Shown: piece after piece, positions 5,553 through 20,012 of the stretch | How the letters are laid out: each line of letters begins with the position of its first letter | Position numbering within the stretch: position 1 is the stretch's first letter | Program-made: the position numbers and the translations under genes | Assembly (NCBI RefSeq): GCF_006345805.1 | Contig: NC_043014.1 | Coordinates: 20,956,001 to 21,020,000 of the forward strand | Direction of reading: 5' to 3' | Length of the DNA: 64,000 nt | From: Octopus sinensis | Taxonomy: Eukaryota | Notes under the pieces: model-generated | The model's database searches: none | The model's input: only the letters and a program-made list of their open reading frames with translations | What the model was told of the DNA's origin: nothing

Positions 5553-5853
5553 TTAAACATCAACCGCGTCATTAAAGGCCTTGTTTACACCAGGGGCGAC
5601 GATACGTGAATAAGGTTCCTCAACATCGTGTGTGTATACACTGACGTATCCAGCCCCGTTATGTTGCTTACCACACGATTCACATTTTTTCTTCTTCTCC
5701 ATGCGAAAATAGATAATTGTTAATACGACAACCACCAAGATTACAGCAGAAAGCGTCAGCGTTAAAATAAACTTAGTTGATGTTCGGCAGACGAGGCTTT
5801 CCACCGGTATCGTGAAAAGGCTTCTACCTTTAAACCTCTTAGGTTCGGCGCAC
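5553..5853 (-). CDS. LRR transmembrane receptor, last coding exon (second half of LRRCT, TM helix, cytoplasmic tail, stop)
   Basis: Acceptor tctttcatgtctttcAG|G at 5854/5853. Encodes CAEPKRFKGRSLFTIPVESLVC, TM FILTLTLSAVILVVVVLTIIYF, and a tail ending DAVDV*. The phase matches the upstream exon. Confidence 0.92.
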
Positions 5854-6021
5854 CTGAAAGACATGAAAGAAGATCAAAACCAGCTTTAGATTAGCTTTAG
5901 ATAGCTTTAATAAATTGTATACGCATGCGTAGACACACGCATGCACACACACATGCACGCACACACGCACGCACGCATGCAATCACACACAATTGCATGC
6001 TTGTACATTCGCATGCATATA

Positions 6022-6424
6022 CTCTTTTACTCTTCTACTTGTTTCAGTCATTTGACTGTGGCCATGTTGGAGCACCGCCTTTAGTCGAGCAAATCAACCC
6101 CAGGACTTATTCTTCGTTAGCCTAGTAATTATTCTAACGGTCACTTTTGCCGAACCGCTAAGTTACGGGGACGTAAACACATCAGCATCGGTTGTCAAGC
6201 GATGTTGGGGGGACAACACAGACACACAAACATATACATACACATACATATATATACATATATACGACGGGCTTCTTTCAGTTTCCGTCTACCAAATCCA
6301 CTCACAAGGCTTTGGTCAGCCCGTGGCTATAGTAGAAGACACTTGCCCAAGATACCACGCACTGGGACTGAACCCGGAACTATGTGGTTGATAAGCAAGC
6401 TACTTACCACACAGCCACTCCTAC
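6022..6424 (-). mobile_element. SINE family A
   Basis: Reverse complement of the 4276-4765 type. Confidence 0.9.
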
Positions 6425-7487
6425 CCCTATGTATATTTATTTATATGCATGTTCTTTTCTGCTTTAAATTATCTAAATTCTTCTGAAGAAGAAGGAACTG
6501 GTTTCTAACAGAGATACAAAGCGAAAACTATGTTCACATTTTAAACCTAAGAAAAGTCTTGCATACTTTTCTGTTCCACCTAGATGTTGAGTCCAAGTGG
6601 AATGAGAGGAGTACTTACGTCTTTTTAGCTGGCTTACTGGTGCTGTGGTGCTGATTTCGCCAGTGGTGGTGTTGTTAGTTTCAGCCATAATAGTGTTAGC
6701 AAAATTGTACGTGGTATAAGGTATATTTTTAAAATTCGCTCTGAATAGCGCTACGTTTATAAATAAAAAGTGTTTCTCTTATTTAACTGATTTAGGTTGG
6801 AGGAGTCGCATAAGTGTAGAAGGCAACGTTCAAAAATATTTTTTAAACGGACCTCTACGCGTGCACGTCTGATGTTGATGACACCATCTTGGCATGTATG
6901 CATTTATGTATGTATGTATGTATGTATGTATGTGTGCATGTATGTATGTATGTATGTATGTATGTATGTATGTATGCGTGCATGTATTTATTTATGTATG
7001 TAGGTTCGAGCTCTATTATGGTACAACGGTGGATGAAATTAATATTCAAGGATCCATAAAGTTTATTTTAATGAGAACCTTTCTATCAGACATATCAACC
7101 CAATCAAATATGACATAGTTATTATTAATAAAAAAAATATTGTAGATGCATTTTTACTAAGCCTAAAGAATGTACTCAAGTAACCTTATGGAACACTAAA
7201 TAGTCAAGAGATGGTCCCCATCTTTAATGGCAAATTTCATGTTTCTACAACTCTTTTTTAAGTATTGTTATGCATCATTTACCAAAGCAGTTCTTATTAA
7301 AGCCCTAAACTGTGCGAGACCAGCTACTACTTTTGTGACGTTGAAATTAGTGTTATAATGCAAGCAAAACAAAATCTCTTCTTATTCCATTTTCATATTG
7401 AAATCTAATGTTTCATTCGATGTTAGCATGGGAGCGAACGATTCCGCAGGGAAAGACGGTCTCCAACTACTTAAAAACTGTAAATCT

Positions 7488-7672
7488 CTATTTACTGACC
7501 TGCTGAAGAAAGACGTACACGTCTTTAGAAAAGAAAGGTATGGCTGTATGATAAGAAGTATGTGTATGTACTAAACTGGGTTTTATACTTGTTTCTTCTA
7601 TCCATCTGTTCAAATCTATAGGGATAGTTCCTAAAGCACCTATAACTACTGGGATACATTTTACTCGCACTT
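7488..7672 (-). mobile_element. short, heavily 5'-truncated R4/Dong-like ORF C-terminus abutting (TAA)n
   Basis: RVKCIPVVIGALGTIP resembles the C-terminal IPIIVGALG region of the 37456-39925 element. Confidence 0.7.
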
Positions 7673-16400: not shown

Positions 16401-17459
16401 GCAGATTAATACCTAACTTCTTCAACCAACCGTTAGAGTGTCCCATCTATAATCGAAGTTGCACATTGGGGTGTGTGGTCATCAAAAGAATTCACGAATG
16501 AATTTGATGGACAGCCGCAAGTCGTAAGCAAGTGTATGTATGTGTGCGCGCGCGCGTGTGCATGTGCAGATGTGTATAAGTGTGCGTGTGTATATGTGTG
16601 CAAGTGTGTGAGCGTGCATCAATGTGTGTGCGTGTAAGTGTGTTGTTAATGTTCTTGTATAACCCTAGGTCAGTCCTAGAACAGACCAATGAATAAATAT
16701 AATCTAAACGTGACCATCAACGTCTTTTCCAAATATATATTATCCAGTGTAACCTCTTTTATCTATGACAGTTGGACGTGAATTGAGGAAGACTTACCTG
16801 TTATTTCTGCTAGTTGGTGAAACTACCCCCAAAGAGGCTCCTTCTGTATGTGTGTGTATGTGTGTTTGTGTGTGTGCGTGTGTGAGAGAGAAAGAAAGAG
16901 AGAGTATTTTTAGAGCAAGATTATTTACAAGGCCTCTGTTCTCTCTGTAGAGTAAAAAAGCTGGTACTACTTCGAACTGTATTGTCTGTTTTAATGCATT
17001 TGTTGAGAGGAAATTGCTTGTGACCGACTAGGGTGGAACCCAACAGAAGGTTTACCTCGCTTCTGTCCTATTAATTGCTATTACTGCTAAAGGAACTGGG
17101 GTTCAATAATGGTGGATTAGACTATGCAGAACTCAAACAGATTAGCTTTGAGTTTATATTACGTAAGTATTCGTGTGTGTGCGTGTGTGTGTGTGTGTCT
17201 GTGTGTGTGTGTGTCTGTGTGTCTGTGTGTGCGTGCGCGCGCGCGCGTGTGTACGTGTGTGTGTTACTGTAGATGCAAAACAACACCACACACTCACCTT
17301 CCGAGTTTCAGTTTCCATACAGTGTGTGCGATTCTTTGTTTACTCATCTACTGTACACTTCGTATTTTCTTTTAATATATTTTAATTAATATGTTATACA
17401 GCGCAGAATTGTACTGCATTTATTAATTTATTAATTTTTAAGCGTGAAAATGCTTATTT

Positions 17460-17642
17460 TACCACAGAAATAATTTAAATCTCCCCCCTCCCCGCCACAA
17501 AAAAAAACAAATACCTATCAGCCACAGGAATCCGCGATATACTGAGGAGTCCGCGATATAAATTTACATATATTAGCCAGAAAAATTCGCGATATACTAA
17601 CGGCGCGATGGATGAACCGCGATATGGCGAAGGATTACTGTA
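17460..17642. mobile_element. Tigger/pogo-like MITE terminus
   Basis: Ends ccgcgatatggcgaaggattactg-TA; four subterminal cgcgatat repeats; opposite end not found. Confidence 0.55.
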
Positions 17643-18801
17643 TATATATATATATATATAATGTAGGCGGCCCATTAGCAATTAAAACCTACAGGCAGTT
17701 GACGACGCGAGTTGCGCTTAACCCTAGGCACAGTAAGATCCACTGAAGAAAACTGAGATGCAATGCTTGAGAGTTCGAAATCACGTGATATGTGTATATT
17801 TGCTTCCTCACTTGTGAGCGTGTCTCACTACAGTACGTAGCTTTCTCGCTTCCTCTCTTTCGTCAACTTATTAAGATAATGCACTTTGTGGCTAACTGAG
17901 TCGTTTTTGACTCTTGTTTCTAGCAATGCTGGTACTATTTTGTATCCTTGCTTATATATATATATATATATATATATATTATATATATATATATATATAT
18001 ATATATATACATACATATATATAATATATATACATATACATATATATATATGCATAAGATCATTTATATATATATATATATATATATACATACATATATA
18101 TAATATATATATATATATATATACATACATATATATAATATATATATATATATGCATAAGATCATTTATATGTATATATATATATATATATATATATATG
18201 AATACATGCATGCCAGTATGTAAGTGTATATGTGCGAATGCAATAATATATACGTATGTATTTGTACACATTGTATGCATACACTTTCAAGCATTCATAC
18301 ATACAAATAAACAAACTTACATAGATTCACAAACACAGAATTGTGTACATGTTAGTATATGTTTATATGTATGTGTTTATGTATGTGTGAACGTATCAAT
18401 GAATGTATGATTGTATATGATTGTATGTGCATGCAAGCAAGGAAGTTAGACAGAGGCAGCGACAGACAAATTGAGAGTGAGTGGGGAGGAAAGAATGAAA
18501 GAAAGAAAGATAGAAAGAAAGAAACACAGAAAGAAAGAAAGAAAGAAAGAAATAAAGAAAGAAAAGAAGGAAGAAAGAAAGAAAATTATGAATGGAGGCT
18601 TGAACAAACAACAAAAACAAAGGCAAAAAGCATAACAAAAAGCACAATAATAATAAAAGAGATATGAGAACGAAAATGGAGGAATAGAAAGTGACAGATA
18701 AAGAGAGGAAAAGAGAAACAAAGCTAGGGAGAGAGGGAGTGAGATAAGCTACACCTATCAAAGTGCTATTATCAAAAGAGTATTTAAGGAGTATAACTTA
18801 C

Positions 18802-20012
18802 TGTAATACAACATTTCTCTGGTTGAATATATTGGCACTTAACATCCAAGATGCAGTGCAATCACAGGTTAAATTTGTCATTGACAAACGTAAAACTTGG
18901 CTCCAGTTTAACATATCCCTGGGCAGTCTGTTAGCCGCAATGTCAATAATAGACGCTAATTTTAGTGATTTATTTGAAAGCGAAAATGCCAAGGCATCAA
19001 TATGGTGTAATTTTGGGTTGTTATTTAAATAGAGACTTTGCAACGCTGTAAAACCACTCTTCTTTGCAGTAATGTATTGTAACAATGGACAGTTGTTGAG
19101 TCGTAAGGTTCTGAGGTTCTTTTTTAAAACCGGCGATAAGAAATCAACATCCAGTTTCTCTAAATGGCTGTTGGAGAGATCCAGGTAACGCAAATTTGGA
19201 CCGGCGAAATTGGAACAAGGCAGCGATCGGAGGTGGTTACCGGCCAAATTCAAATGGTATAAATTATGTATGCGACTCAACGATGCACAGTGTAGTTTGG
19301 TCACGTGATTTCCGTTCAACAACAGTGTATTAATACGTGCAAAACAGAACAGTGACGGCGATATCTCTGTCAGAGAATTATGGCTTAAATCAAGCTTTTT
19401 TAAGCGGATAATATTTGCAAAAGACAGTGCGTGAAGTTTAGAGATATTATTATGAGATAAGTTCAAAACGGTGCACTTATCAAGGTTTGCCAAAGCAGAG
19501 GGTTCGACTACGCTAATGTGGCAATAGGAAAAATCGATTTCATAATGCAACCTCGAGAAATACGACACTATAAATACATTGTTTTTAATGATATATAAAG
19601 GGTTTCCCTTCAAAATTAGACGCTCCAGACTCTCCAATTTTTCGAACGTTTTCACCGTCAAACTGGTACCGGTGATTTTGTTATATGATAAATCAAGCGT
19701 TTTCAGTTGTTTGGTGTGTTCAAATGCCAGTGTTTCGATTGTAGTAATGTGGTTGTGAGAGAGATTGAGATAAATTAGTTTTGGATAGTCGATCTTACTG
19801 ATTGCAACGATGCGGTTGTGGTCAAGATAGATGTGTGTAGTGTTTCTGGGTAAATCAATCGGCAACAGCAGGTGATCTCTTGCAGTTCCATTGAAAATTA
19901 CCGAGACACTCGACTCGGATCCAGTGAAAGTAGATATGAAGACCAGCAAGAGAAACGTGAAGCATGTTGATCCAAATTGGGTGCACCAAAGTTGCGTCAT
20001 CAGAGCAGACAT
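18802..20012 (-). CDS. LRR transmembrane receptor, first coding exon (signal peptide, ~12-13 LRRs, first half of LRRCT)
   Basis: 404-aa ORF with LxxLxLxxNxI repeats (LIYLNLSHNHI, LKTLDLSYNKI, LKKLDLSHNSL...), hydrophobic N-terminus and LTCDC. Upstream acceptor tttttgacAG at 20036; downstream donor GTAAGT. Spliced product is 503 aa. Confidence 0.95.

Follow-up and report, generated by a model that had tools for sequence, protein, structure and literature searches.

A stretch of Octopus sinensis DNA 64 kb in length (the window) was analyzed and contains a genuine two-exon gene for a leucine-rich repeat (LRR) cell-surface protein. All of the features described below lie on the (-) strand. The ORF list gave two reading frames on this strand, one of 404 aa at 18798-20012 and one of 103 aa at 5553-5864, and an earlier sequence-only reading had proposed that they are joined at 18802/5853 through canonical phase-2 splice sites. 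The junction was found at exactly these coordinates and in frame.

Gene model and splice junction

Coding exon 1 (18802-20012, 1211 nt) opens with an ATG at 20012-20010, according to the sequence and its translation, and an in-frame TGA can be read from the sequence 9 nt 5' of this codon. The exon carries codons 1-403 and the first two bases of codon 404; the signal peptide, an N-terminal cap without Cys, and the LRRs all lie on it, as does the first half of the LRRCT. It ends in ...GTATTACA at 18802, and the splice donor (GTAAGT, 18796-18801) opens the intron at 18801; from the exon length of 1211 nt, the donor was deduced to be in phase 2. Retention of the intron would bring an immediate in-frame TAA after exon 1 (CAG TAA). 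The intron (5854-18801) spans 12,948 nt, is rich in microsatellites and SINE-like repeats, and ends in ...tcatgtctttcAG at 5854, the polypyrimidine tract and acceptor (5854-5875) reading ...ttgatcttctttcatgtctttcAG. Coding exon 2 (5553-5853, 301 nt including the TAA stop at 5555-5553) begins with GTGCGCC at 5853 and supplies the second half of the LRRCT, the transmembrane (TM) helix, and the cytoplasmic tail, which relatives matched in tblastn searches. The spliced exons give 1512 nt, corresponding to 503 aa and the TAA. Additional internal exons had been raised as a concern in the sequence-only reading; no further coding exon was detected in the intron by tblastn with family members and with Ig-bearing and TIR-bearing LRR proteins, which matched only the two known exons.

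The same junction was observed in other molluscs; together with the 5' in-frame TGA and the Pfam LRR match given below, this puts the gene well outside what chance would produce. The donor GTAAGT is identical in Octopus bimaculoides and likewise present in Argonauta and Lottia, while Mercenaria has GTAAGA, and the acceptor is also kept in O. bimaculoides (...ctcttctttcgtgtctttcAG). The orthologous ORF of Sepia esculenta is uninterrupted on contigs assembled from larval RNA-seq runs. The dN/dS ratio against O. bimaculoides was 0.48 for the whole gene, 0.58 for the ectodomain, 0.24 for the TM helix plus tail, and 0.20 for aa 456-503; as judged from the sequences, the tail is under purifying selection.

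Ectodomain, membrane anchor, and tail

From the N terminus, the encoded protein consists of a signal peptide and a Cys-free N-cap, followed by about 13 LRRs and an LRRCT with four Cys; a TM helix then leads into a disordered tail of 50 residues. The predicted signal peptide (19920-20012, approximately aa 1-31, hydrophobic core FTFLLLVFISTF) was read from the sequence, with a putative cleavage site; the AF2 model has an N-terminal helix at residues 2-29 with low pLDDT. The LRR solenoid (18879-19850, approximately aa 55-378) comprises about 13 repeats matching Pfam LRR_8 (E=3.7e-37), LRR_4, and LRR_1, and was modeled by AF2 as about 14 parallel beta-strand rungs with pLDDT of 75-94. A motif count gave eight N-glycosylation sequons in the ectodomain. 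The absence of Ig, FN3, and TIR domains claimed in the sequence-only reading agrees with the present data, as the protein had no Pfam match to any of the three and the 64-kb window showed no coding for them, tblastn with Ig- and TIR-bearing LRR proteins giving no Ig or TIR match anywhere in it.

The LRRCT is divided between the exons, C383 and C385 coming from exon 1 (18802-18872) and C405 and C426 from exon 2 (5787-5853). All sequences of the cephalopod alignment have these four cysteines, and in the wider family their conservation is 90% or more. The Pfam LRRCT model itself scores weakly (E=0.055), while hhalign against the LRRCT of TPBGL gave a probability of 97.6%; for this assignment, profile alignment to the LRRCTs of relatives and of TPBGL is better support than the Pfam model. 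The TM helix (5706-5771, aa 432-453, FILTLTLSAVILVVVVLTIIYF) coincides with the Kyte-Doolittle maximum of 2.99 at 433-451 and with an AF2 helix at 430-456. The anatomy of LRRCT, TM helix, and tail described earlier was borne out by the translation, Pfam, and tblastn.

The cytoplasmic tail (5556-5705, aa 454-503) is predicted to be disordered, with pLDDT below 50 at 458-463 and 467-503. Its sequence is identical, letter by letter, to that reported before, including CxxC (461-464), YVSV (473-476), YSRI (485-488), separated from V476 by eight residues, and VDV at the end. The juxtamembrane C-x-x-C-G-x-x-H motif (5661-5684, aa 461-468) follows a polybasic KKKK run, and K459, C461, C464, G465, and H468 are invariant among the five cephalopod sequences aligned, so that the CxxC noted earlier is fully conserved in these five; many bivalve and gastropod relatives, though not all, also have a juxtamembrane Cys, often as CxxC. 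The Y-V-S-V-Y element (5634-5648, aa 473-477) belongs to a family-wide motif, G-x-Y-[VT]-x-[VI]-Y-[ST]-x-[DE]. Residues G472 to Y477 are invariant in cephalopods, Y473 and Y477 are at least 90% conserved among 20 molluscan sequences, and bivalves, gastropods, and cephalopods all keep G-x-Y-V/T-x-V-Y-S/T followed by an acidic stretch.

The C-terminal V-D-V (5556-5564, aa 501-503) is PDZ-ligand-like or ER-export-like. D502 and V503 are invariant in cephalopods, and the x-D-V ending singled out in the sequence-only reading predominates over the molluscan family: the C terminus is hydrophobic, mostly Φ-D-V, with V at p0 in 19 and D at p-1 in 17 of the 28 sequences. Since the terminal x-D-V is conserved, a PDZ-ligand reading is reasonable at the level of pattern; a single class of PDZ partner is not guaranteed, because p-2 varies (F, V, I, T, S, or E) and a few members end in D or E. 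A C-terminal valine alone can also serve as an ER-export signal. The functions suggested for the tail motifs (palmitoylation, AP-2/SH2 binding, and PDZ binding) are read from short patterns, which are weak predictors.

Orthologues and the mollusc-wide family

The gene had been described as hidden. This description does not hold: for O. bimaculoides, a 503-aa model with the matching junction is already deposited (P0001); it lies at the syntenic locus, is 91% identical, and corresponds to the product of exon 1 plus exon 2. The name assigned to it automatically, [quoted passage not shown] misleads, as the protein lacks an Ig domain. The Argonauta hians orthologue (P0002, "uncharacterized protein LOC115221661") has 59% full-length identity and the same junction, and the Sepia esculenta transcript product (P0003) has 39% full-length identity and ends in T-D-V. 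All three share the tail motifs and the order of domains with the O. sinensis protein, are of the same length (499-503 aa), and differ from it at Y485.

Beyond cephalopods, the protein was shown to belong to a mollusc-wide family marked by the phase-2 intron within the LRRCT and by the conserved tail motifs. The intron position is identical in Argonauta, Lottia, and Mercenaria, with lengths of 1,146 nt in Argonauta and 346 nt in Lottia. When 1.84 billion proteins were searched exhaustively with a cephalopod LRRCT-TM-tail HMM profile, only 61 matched, the family matches having E-values of 1e-14 to 1e-4. Members include Mercenaria XP_045209568, Sinanodonta KAL3887309 and KAL3887312, Saccostrea XP_061184646, Mytilus VDI09173, and Mizuhopecten XP_021358733; further members are Lottia XP_009060219, Patella XP_050392718, Littorina XP_070189435, and Solemya KAL5019775 and KAL5019776. 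Compared with the octopus protein, the bivalve members are shorter (387-429 aa), have fewer LRRs, and retain a Cys-containing N-cap; an acidic G-G-D often precedes the tyrosine, and some end in -IYA or -VYA. Names given to family members in databases conflict (slit-like, ALS, chondroadherin-like, LRRN2, and LINGO-like). Members of this family are unstudied. The earlier suggestion of a lineage-specific receptor was only partly borne out, as the bivalve and gastropod homologues share the tail motifs and intron position; no characterized orthologue was found.

Proposed function and comparison with known systems

The locus encodes a type I, single-pass, glycosylated "LRR-only" cell-surface protein that probably acts as an adhesion molecule or coreceptor, trafficked and anchored by motifs of its tail, rather than as an ITAM immunoreceptor. 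The LRR arc would bind an extracellular partner, and with no enzymatic, TIR, or ITAM module, coupling to the cell would proceed through short linear motifs. The polybasic stretch and juxtamembrane cysteines would most likely be S-palmitoylated, the G-x-YVSVY-S/T element with its acidic stretch would most likely direct sorting as a YxxΦ-type signal and might also be a phosphotyrosine docking site, and the C-terminal Φ-D-V would most likely be a ligand for a PDZ scaffold. Such a protein would be a scaffold-anchored, endocytically regulated adhesion molecule or coreceptor, as are 5T4/TPBG, the LRRTMs, LRTM1/2, and the NGLs in vertebrates.

A closer relationship, in which TPBG/5T4/WAIF and TPBGL have their lophotrochozoan counterpart in the molluscan family and this family acts similarly (modulating Wnt/LRP6 or chemokine signaling, shaping dendrites, and binding GIPC via its C terminus), is rather unlikely. 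Like the octopus protein, TPBG/5T4/WAIF1 and TPBGL (WAIF2) are LRR-only, type I proteins with juxtamembrane Cys and tails of about 44-50 aa, which carry a G-Y-x3-Y-x2-D stretch with acidic residues after it and, in the case of TPBG, an x-D-V end; TPBG has fewer LRRs. Human 5T4 has a 44-aa tail whose C-terminal Ser-Asp-Val binds the GIPC PDZ domain (PMC3988984); its S-D-V is comparable to the T-D-V of Sepia, and its length of 420 aa to the 404-425 aa of bivalve members. A marsupial TPBGL fragment (P0142, E=1.3e-5) was among the 61 matches in 1.84 billion proteins, hhalign of the C-terminal regions aligned GY-x3-Y-x2-D of TPBGL (EGYHYRYEQD) with G-x-YVSVY-T-x-D, and TPBG alone among LRR-only TM proteins has an apparent fly orthologue, CG6959 (PMC2235866). 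However, when the comparison was split, the LRRCT alone accounted for the score (97.6%) and the tail alone gave P=0.38. Furthermore, TPBGL was the lowest-ranked non-family LRR protein in full-length phmmer, TPBG was not among the best 60 PDB matches, and other, unrelated-looking LRR-TM families equaled or beat TPBGL in the exhaustive HMM search. Xenopus TPBGL has a single exon, and the TPBGL tails listed terminate in G-L, G-I, or A-V rather than x-D-V. Since the tail-only profile comparison was not significant, the TPBG/5T4 link is a lead only, and beyond the generic LRRCT no homology can be demonstrated.

It is improbable that the gene encodes a TIR-less Toll-like or RP105-like pattern-recognition protein, or a decoy, for innate immunity. 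Sequence and structure searches brought up TLR3, TLR7, TLR9, TLR13, and CD180, the ectodomain is comparatively fast-evolving, and consecutive locus tags indicate that bivalve relatives are neighboring paralogues. The TLR matches were nevertheless generic, being mixed with ALS, LRIG1, SHOC2, NgR, LGR5, and LINGO-1; the TIR domain is absent, and TLR/RP105 proteins do not have the conserved PDZ-like and YxxΦ tail.

The sequence-only reading had inferred a tyrosine-signaling LRR receptor with an ITAM-like tail. As an ITAM-like immunoreceptor, the protein would use YVSV...YSRI, once phosphorylated, to recruit a kinase with tandem SH2 domains (Syk-type). YxxV-x8-YxxI is literally present in O. sinensis and Y473 is conserved across the family, but the second tyrosine, Y485 (codon TAT, 5610-5612), is unique to this species. 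It is replaced in every other cephalopod compared: by Ser in its congener O. bimaculoides through one base (TAT versus TCT), by His in Argonauta, and by Val or Thr in the Sepia and P0004 sequences; bivalves and gastropods have no equivalent residue. In the first half of the motif, V stands in place of L/I, and the conserved pair Y473/Y477, with only four residues from one to the next, is not spaced as in an ITAM. The check that the sequence-only reading itself had proposed, conservation of the tyrosines in orthologues, thus contradicts ITAM signaling, which is very doubtful, and because the proposed motif is not conserved, the gene is fairly ordinary. A pseudogene or annotation artifact (a decaying gene or chance join) is scarcely credible: direct transcript support comes from Sepia rather than O. 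sinensis and whole-gene dN/dS is fairly high, but the 503-codon frame is unbroken, the splice sites are kept over about four mollusc lineages, the tail is under purifying selection, and the orthologue is expressed in Sepia larvae.

For the favored adhesion molecule or coreceptor, close parallels in design are LRRTM1-4, LRTM1/2, and the NGL/LRRC4 family, which likewise combine an LRR arc, LRRCT, TM helix, and short tail; the tails of LRTM1/2 have an acidic stretch and predicted C-terminal PDZ-binding sequences (PMC2235866). LRRTM2, NGL, and LRFN5 were among the generic matches, and no specific sequence relationship of LRRTM, LRTM, or NGL to the octopus protein was seen. Because this LRR-only class diversifies independently in separate phyla (PMC2235866), the likeness to these proteins is one of mode of action rather than family membership.

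Gene model and its support in other molluscs

The DNA of the window is AT-rich, eukaryotic and laden with microsatellites, and its ORF list contains two minus-strand frames of 404 codons (20012-18798) and 103 codons (5864-5553). The first exon was found to end with ...GTATTACA at 18802, followed by a GTAAGT donor, and ahead of the downstream ORF lies a pyrimidine tract whose last bases are ...tcatgtctttcAG at 5854. The join of 20012-18802 to 5853-5553 gives 1512 nt in frame, with a 12,948-nt phase 2 intron that interrupts codon 404 after its second base. An in-frame TGA was read from the sequence 9 nt 5' of the ATG. 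The sequence-only reading had placed the junction at exactly 18802/5853 and had given the same tail letter for letter, and the model of two joined exons is held with very high confidence. The description of the gene as hidden was not retained, as a model of it already exists for the sister species O. bimaculoides. Overall, the original observation is confirmed and its interpretation is supported in part.

The best database match was the O. bimaculoides orthologue P0001 (503 aa, 91% identity over 100% of the length), whose locus is collinear with the window, intron included, at 87-93% DNA identity. The deposited product consists of the equivalents of exons 1 and 2, with the same GTAAGTTATACTCC donor and a tctttcAG acceptor. 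A phase-2 intron one codon ahead of the third LRRCT cysteine is common to the window, O. bimaculoides, Argonauta, Lottia and Mercenaria. The homologous intron measures 1,146 nt in Argonauta hians and 346 nt in the limpet Lottia gigantea, and is the second of two introns in the clam Mercenaria mercenaria. Because the orthologous introns of Argonauta and Lottia are this short, there is no space for hidden internal exons.

Further support was obtained from the cuttlefish transcript product P0003 (500 aa, 39% identity), which was found uninterrupted on contigs of less than 2 kb in 43 sequencing runs. The RNA origin of these contigs was taken from the papers depositing the runs: two of the 43, SRR23936169 and SRR19578105, are RNA-seq libraries prepared from whole hatchlings of Sepia esculenta (PMC10571815, PMC10141105). 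Since the P0003 frame lies on RNA-seq contigs, the joined frame was deduced to be the mature message in cuttlefish and the orthologue to be expressed in larvae. Alignment of the Sepia contigs at their 5' ends showed them to be collinear, with no splice variants. A literature search for LOC115221661 (the Argonauta hians entry P0002) and for the runs carrying P0004, another cephalopod relative, returned nothing.

Since the intron is in phase 2 and begins with a GTAAG donor, its retention would lead straight into an in-frame TAA (18798-18800, minus strand). Unspliced RNA would give a 404-aa secreted fragment with two of the four LRRCT cysteines and without the TM helix and tail. The homologous donors of Argonauta, Lottia and Mercenaria likewise give an in-frame TAA upon intron retention.

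Elsewhere in the window, two plus-strand ORFs at 37626-38348 and 39015-39401 matched the Pfam families RVT_1 (E=7e-23) and zf-RVT (E=7e-7) and are a fragmented remnant of a non-LTR retrotransposon. A dispersed repeat is present on both strands in at least seven copies (~6202-6486, 11092-11331, 11701-11979, 32767-33138, 57080-57586, 57506-57859 and 58298-58792), three of them within the intron of the LRR gene. One of its frames reads ...RLPNPLTR(L/H), 15 further residues and (T/S)GTEPGTMWL..., and the repeat looks like a SINE-type element with flanking microsatellites. No intact tRNA was found in the window by ARAGORN. The 126-aa ORF at 1578-1958 (minus strand) is N-, K- and E-rich, matches no Pfam family, lies within a region of strongly skewed base composition and is probably repeat-derived.

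Protein class and the cytoplasmic tail

Pfam matched the joined protein to LRR families (LRR_8, E=3.7e-37) and weakly to LRRCT at residues 404-426 (E=0.055). The LRRCT cysteines are contributed by both exons, C383 and C385 by exon 1 and C405 and C426 by exon 2. The hydropathy maximum was at 433-451, and eight N-glycosylation sequons were counted in the ectodomain. The AlphaFold2 model, for which the five-sequence cephalopod alignment was the input, consisted of an LRR solenoid with some 14 rungs of beta-strand (pLDDT 75-94 across residues 50-350), a helix at 430-456 and a tail predicted to be disordered (pLDDT below 50). No Ig, FN3 or TIR domain was matched by Pfam in the joined protein, and in tblastn against the whole 64 kb the Ig-bearing LRR protein P0050 and the TIR-bearing P0079 matched the LRR exon only. 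The lack of these domains, as initially read, is thereby borne out by Pfam for all three and by tblastn for Ig and TIR.

Toll-like receptors are defined by a cytoplasmic TIR domain. This identity was rejected as TIR was absent both from Pfam and from the tblastn search with P0079, and the protein stops 50 residues past the TM helix with a conserved C terminus. In LRIG proteins, the LRRCT is separated from the TM helix by three Ig-like domains. Membership of this family was also rejected, as only five residues separate C426 from the TM helix, no Ig domain was matched, and P0050 matches the LRRs only; without an Ig domain, the automatic name "LRIG1" given to the orthologue in O. bimaculoides is incorrect. 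The presence of LRR families only in Pfam, the TM hydropathy peak, the AlphaFold2 helix and the lack of Ig and TIR matches correspond to the LRR_Only class, whose members have a signal peptide, LRRCT-capped LRRs, a single TM helix, a short cytoplasmic tail and nothing else (PMC2235866). The octopus gene product is an LRR-only type I membrane protein, an already known kind.

At the N-cap (window 19890-19910, residues ~35-41), the cephalopod proteins are cysteine-free ("VIFNGT"), and their bivalve and gastropod relatives have "IFNCS/IWNCS" with an upstream Cys. From these sequences, the LRRNT disulphide seems to have been lost in cephalopods and the glycosylation sequon retained.

Across five cephalopod tails, the invariant residues were K459, C461, C464, G465, H468, G472, Y473, V474, S475, V476, Y477, E483, P484, I488, D502 and V503. 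Both the juxtamembrane CxxC (C461, C464) and the terminal D-V (D502, V503) pointed out from the sequence are therefore conserved. An ITAM consists of two YxxL/I motifs with 6-8 residues between, and it functions when both tyrosines, once phosphorylated, engage a tandem-SH2 kinase of the Syk family; the definitions of the YxxΦ and PDZ-class motifs are likewise established. The window tail had been proposed to be ITAM-like, and its YVSV-x8-YSRI fits in spacing, with V instead of L/I in the first half. The second tyrosine, Y485, is not conserved in the orthologues, being replaced by Ser in O. bimaculoides (TAT versus TCT, a single base), His in Argonauta, Val in Sepia and Thr in P0004, and it has no counterpart in the 20-sequence alignment of the molluscan family. 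The conserved tyrosines are Y473 and Y477, which are four residues apart, unlike ITAM spacing. The sequence-only reading had itself named tyrosines that differ between orthologues as evidence against its proposal, and the ITAM was abandoned. The hemITAM (acidic-G-Y-x-x-L) was considered in view of the bivalve D-G-G-D-Y-V-x-V and was rejected for the octopus protein, as the cephalopod tails are without acidic residues upstream of the Tyr.

A mollusc-wide family and the proposed role of its tail

An HMM of the cephalopod LRRCT-TM-tail profile, searched exhaustively against 1.84 billion representative proteins, gave 61 matches in all. The top matches were LRR-TM proteins of 387-586 aa from bivalves (Mercenaria, Sinanodonta, Saccostrea, Mytilus, Mizuhopecten and Solemya) and gastropods (Lottia, Patella and Littorina). 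Three elements recur in their tails: G-x-Y-[VT]-x-[VI]-Y-[ST]-x-[DE] with an acidic stretch after it, a [RK]-[VI]-x-[IM] segment and a hydrophobic C terminus that is mostly Φ-D-V. The window protein carries both the tail motif and the terminus (GAGYVSVYTHD...AVDV). Position p0 is V in 19 of 28 sequences and A, I or L in 6 of 28, p-1 is D in 17, and p-2 is F, V or I in 18. Both tail tyrosines of the family motif were at least 90% conserved in the 20-sequence alignment, for which the mean column identity was 34%. Many members of the family, though not all, carry juxtamembrane cysteines, often as CxxC.

The common tail features and intron position place the octopus gene in a mollusc-wide family rather than marking it as a cephalopod invention. 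The database names of the members conflict (slit-like, ALS, chondroadherin-like, LRRN2 and LINGO-like), which points to an uncharacterised family. The suggestion of a possibly lineage-specific receptor is supported only in part, as bivalves and gastropods have homologues with these tail motifs and this intron position.

Several bivalve members lie on a single scaffold with nearly consecutive accessions or locus tags (Sinanodonta KAL3887309/KAL3887312, Solemya KAL5019775/KAL5019776 and Mytilus VDI09172/VDI09173), which suggests tandem paralogues; the octopus window has one copy. The tails of the LRR-TM proteins P0152 (Priapulus caudatus) and P0174 (from a transcript) read "(R/K)YVSVID..." downstream of a juxtamembrane CC. 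Only this first tyrosine motif (R-Y-V-S-V-I-D) is common to them and the molluscan family, and on these sequences the YVSV element may be older than molluscs.

We infer that the protein is most likely an LRR-only adhesion molecule or co-receptor, the disordered tail of which would act through short linear motifs. The polybasic stretch and juxtamembrane cysteines would most likely be palmitoylated, a zinc site formed by the cephalopod CxxC...H being a less likely alternative. The YVSV, as a YxxΦ-type signal with a downstream acidic stretch, could direct sorting or endocytosis and possibly phosphotyrosine docking, and the Φ-D-V end could be a class II-like PDZ ligand or merely a C-terminal-valine ER-export signal. 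The dN/dS against O. bimaculoides was 0.48 across the whole gene, with 0.58 in the ectodomain and 0.20-0.24 in the TM helix and tail; the stronger constraint on the tail fits the linear-motif mechanism. A more far-reaching proposal is that the conserved tail marks an undescribed mollusc-wide receptor family with a signalling logic of its own, composed of CxxC(...H), YVSVY, the acidic stretch and Φ-D-V, and this was considered unlikely. One version would make the protein a protostome counterpart of 5T4/TPBG, in which the LRR ectodomain would be linked to scaffolds of the GIPC type and to Wnt or chemokine pathways. Another would make the tail a phosphotyrosine docking module, clustered through zinc or palmitate, that is unrelated to ITAM/ITIM.

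LRR-only membrane proteins are major participants in neural wiring and innate recognition, and to our knowledge those of molluscs are almost unexplored. The significance of the present results is modest overall. The misleading name of the orthologue is corrected, an attractive ITAM hypothesis that was unsupported is removed, and an unstudied LRR-only membrane protein family common to bivalves, gastropods and cephalopods is delineated. Two characters are diagnostic for it, the phase-2 intron within the LRRCT and the tail signature G-x-Y-x-x-V-Y...Φ-D-V. Should the tail motifs turn out to have a function, the family would offer a tractable entry point.

A possible relation to TPBG/5T4

PDB sequence searches and Foldseek returned a generic LRR mixture (ALS, LRIG1, TLR3/7/9, LRRC32, LGR4/5, SHOC2, NgR, NGL2 and LINGO-1). 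These rankings are uninformative on orthology, as TPBG comes no higher than rank 21 even when the query is an authentic TPBGL fragment. Another group of molluscan LRR-TM proteins, with a "YYQYRRYKND" tail (P0139, P0141, P0146 and P0165), was considered as the real TPBG-like clade and could not be linked to TPBGL, its tail-only hhalign comparison being nonsignificant against TPBGL and also against the family of the octopus gene.

Membership of the molluscan family itself in TPBG/5T4 was judged quite unlikely. The lead came from the S-D-V tail of 5T4. In its favour were the marsupial TPBGL fragment P0142, which was among the 61 HMM matches (E=1.3e-5), and an hhalign comparison of the C-terminal region (98.3%) that placed TPBGL EGYHYRYEQD in register with the family G-x-YVSVY-T-x-D. 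When this comparison was split, however, the LRRCT alone gave a generic 97.6%, the TM helix and tail gave P=8e-5 owed to hydrophobic residues, and the tail alone was not significant (P=0.38). Furthermore, TPBGL ranked last among the non-family LRR proteins in a full-length phmmer comparison, TPBG was not favoured in the PDB rankings, none of the TPBGL tails among those listed has an x-D-V end, and Xenopus TPBGL is a single exon. If the kinship were confirmed, a Wnt-modulating family would extend to Lophotrochozoa.

TPBG alone among LRR-only TM proteins has an apparent orthologue in the fly (PMC2235866). Human 5T4 is an LRR-only protein of 420 aa that requires the ectodomain residues K76 and F97 for Wnt inhibition, and its 44-aa tail ends in Ser-Asp-Val, a PDZ ligand for GIPC/TIP-2 through which it binds the GIPC PDZ domain (PMC3988984). 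Compared with this terminus, the V-D-V of the window protein and the T-D-V of Sepia have the D-V in common and differ at p-2.
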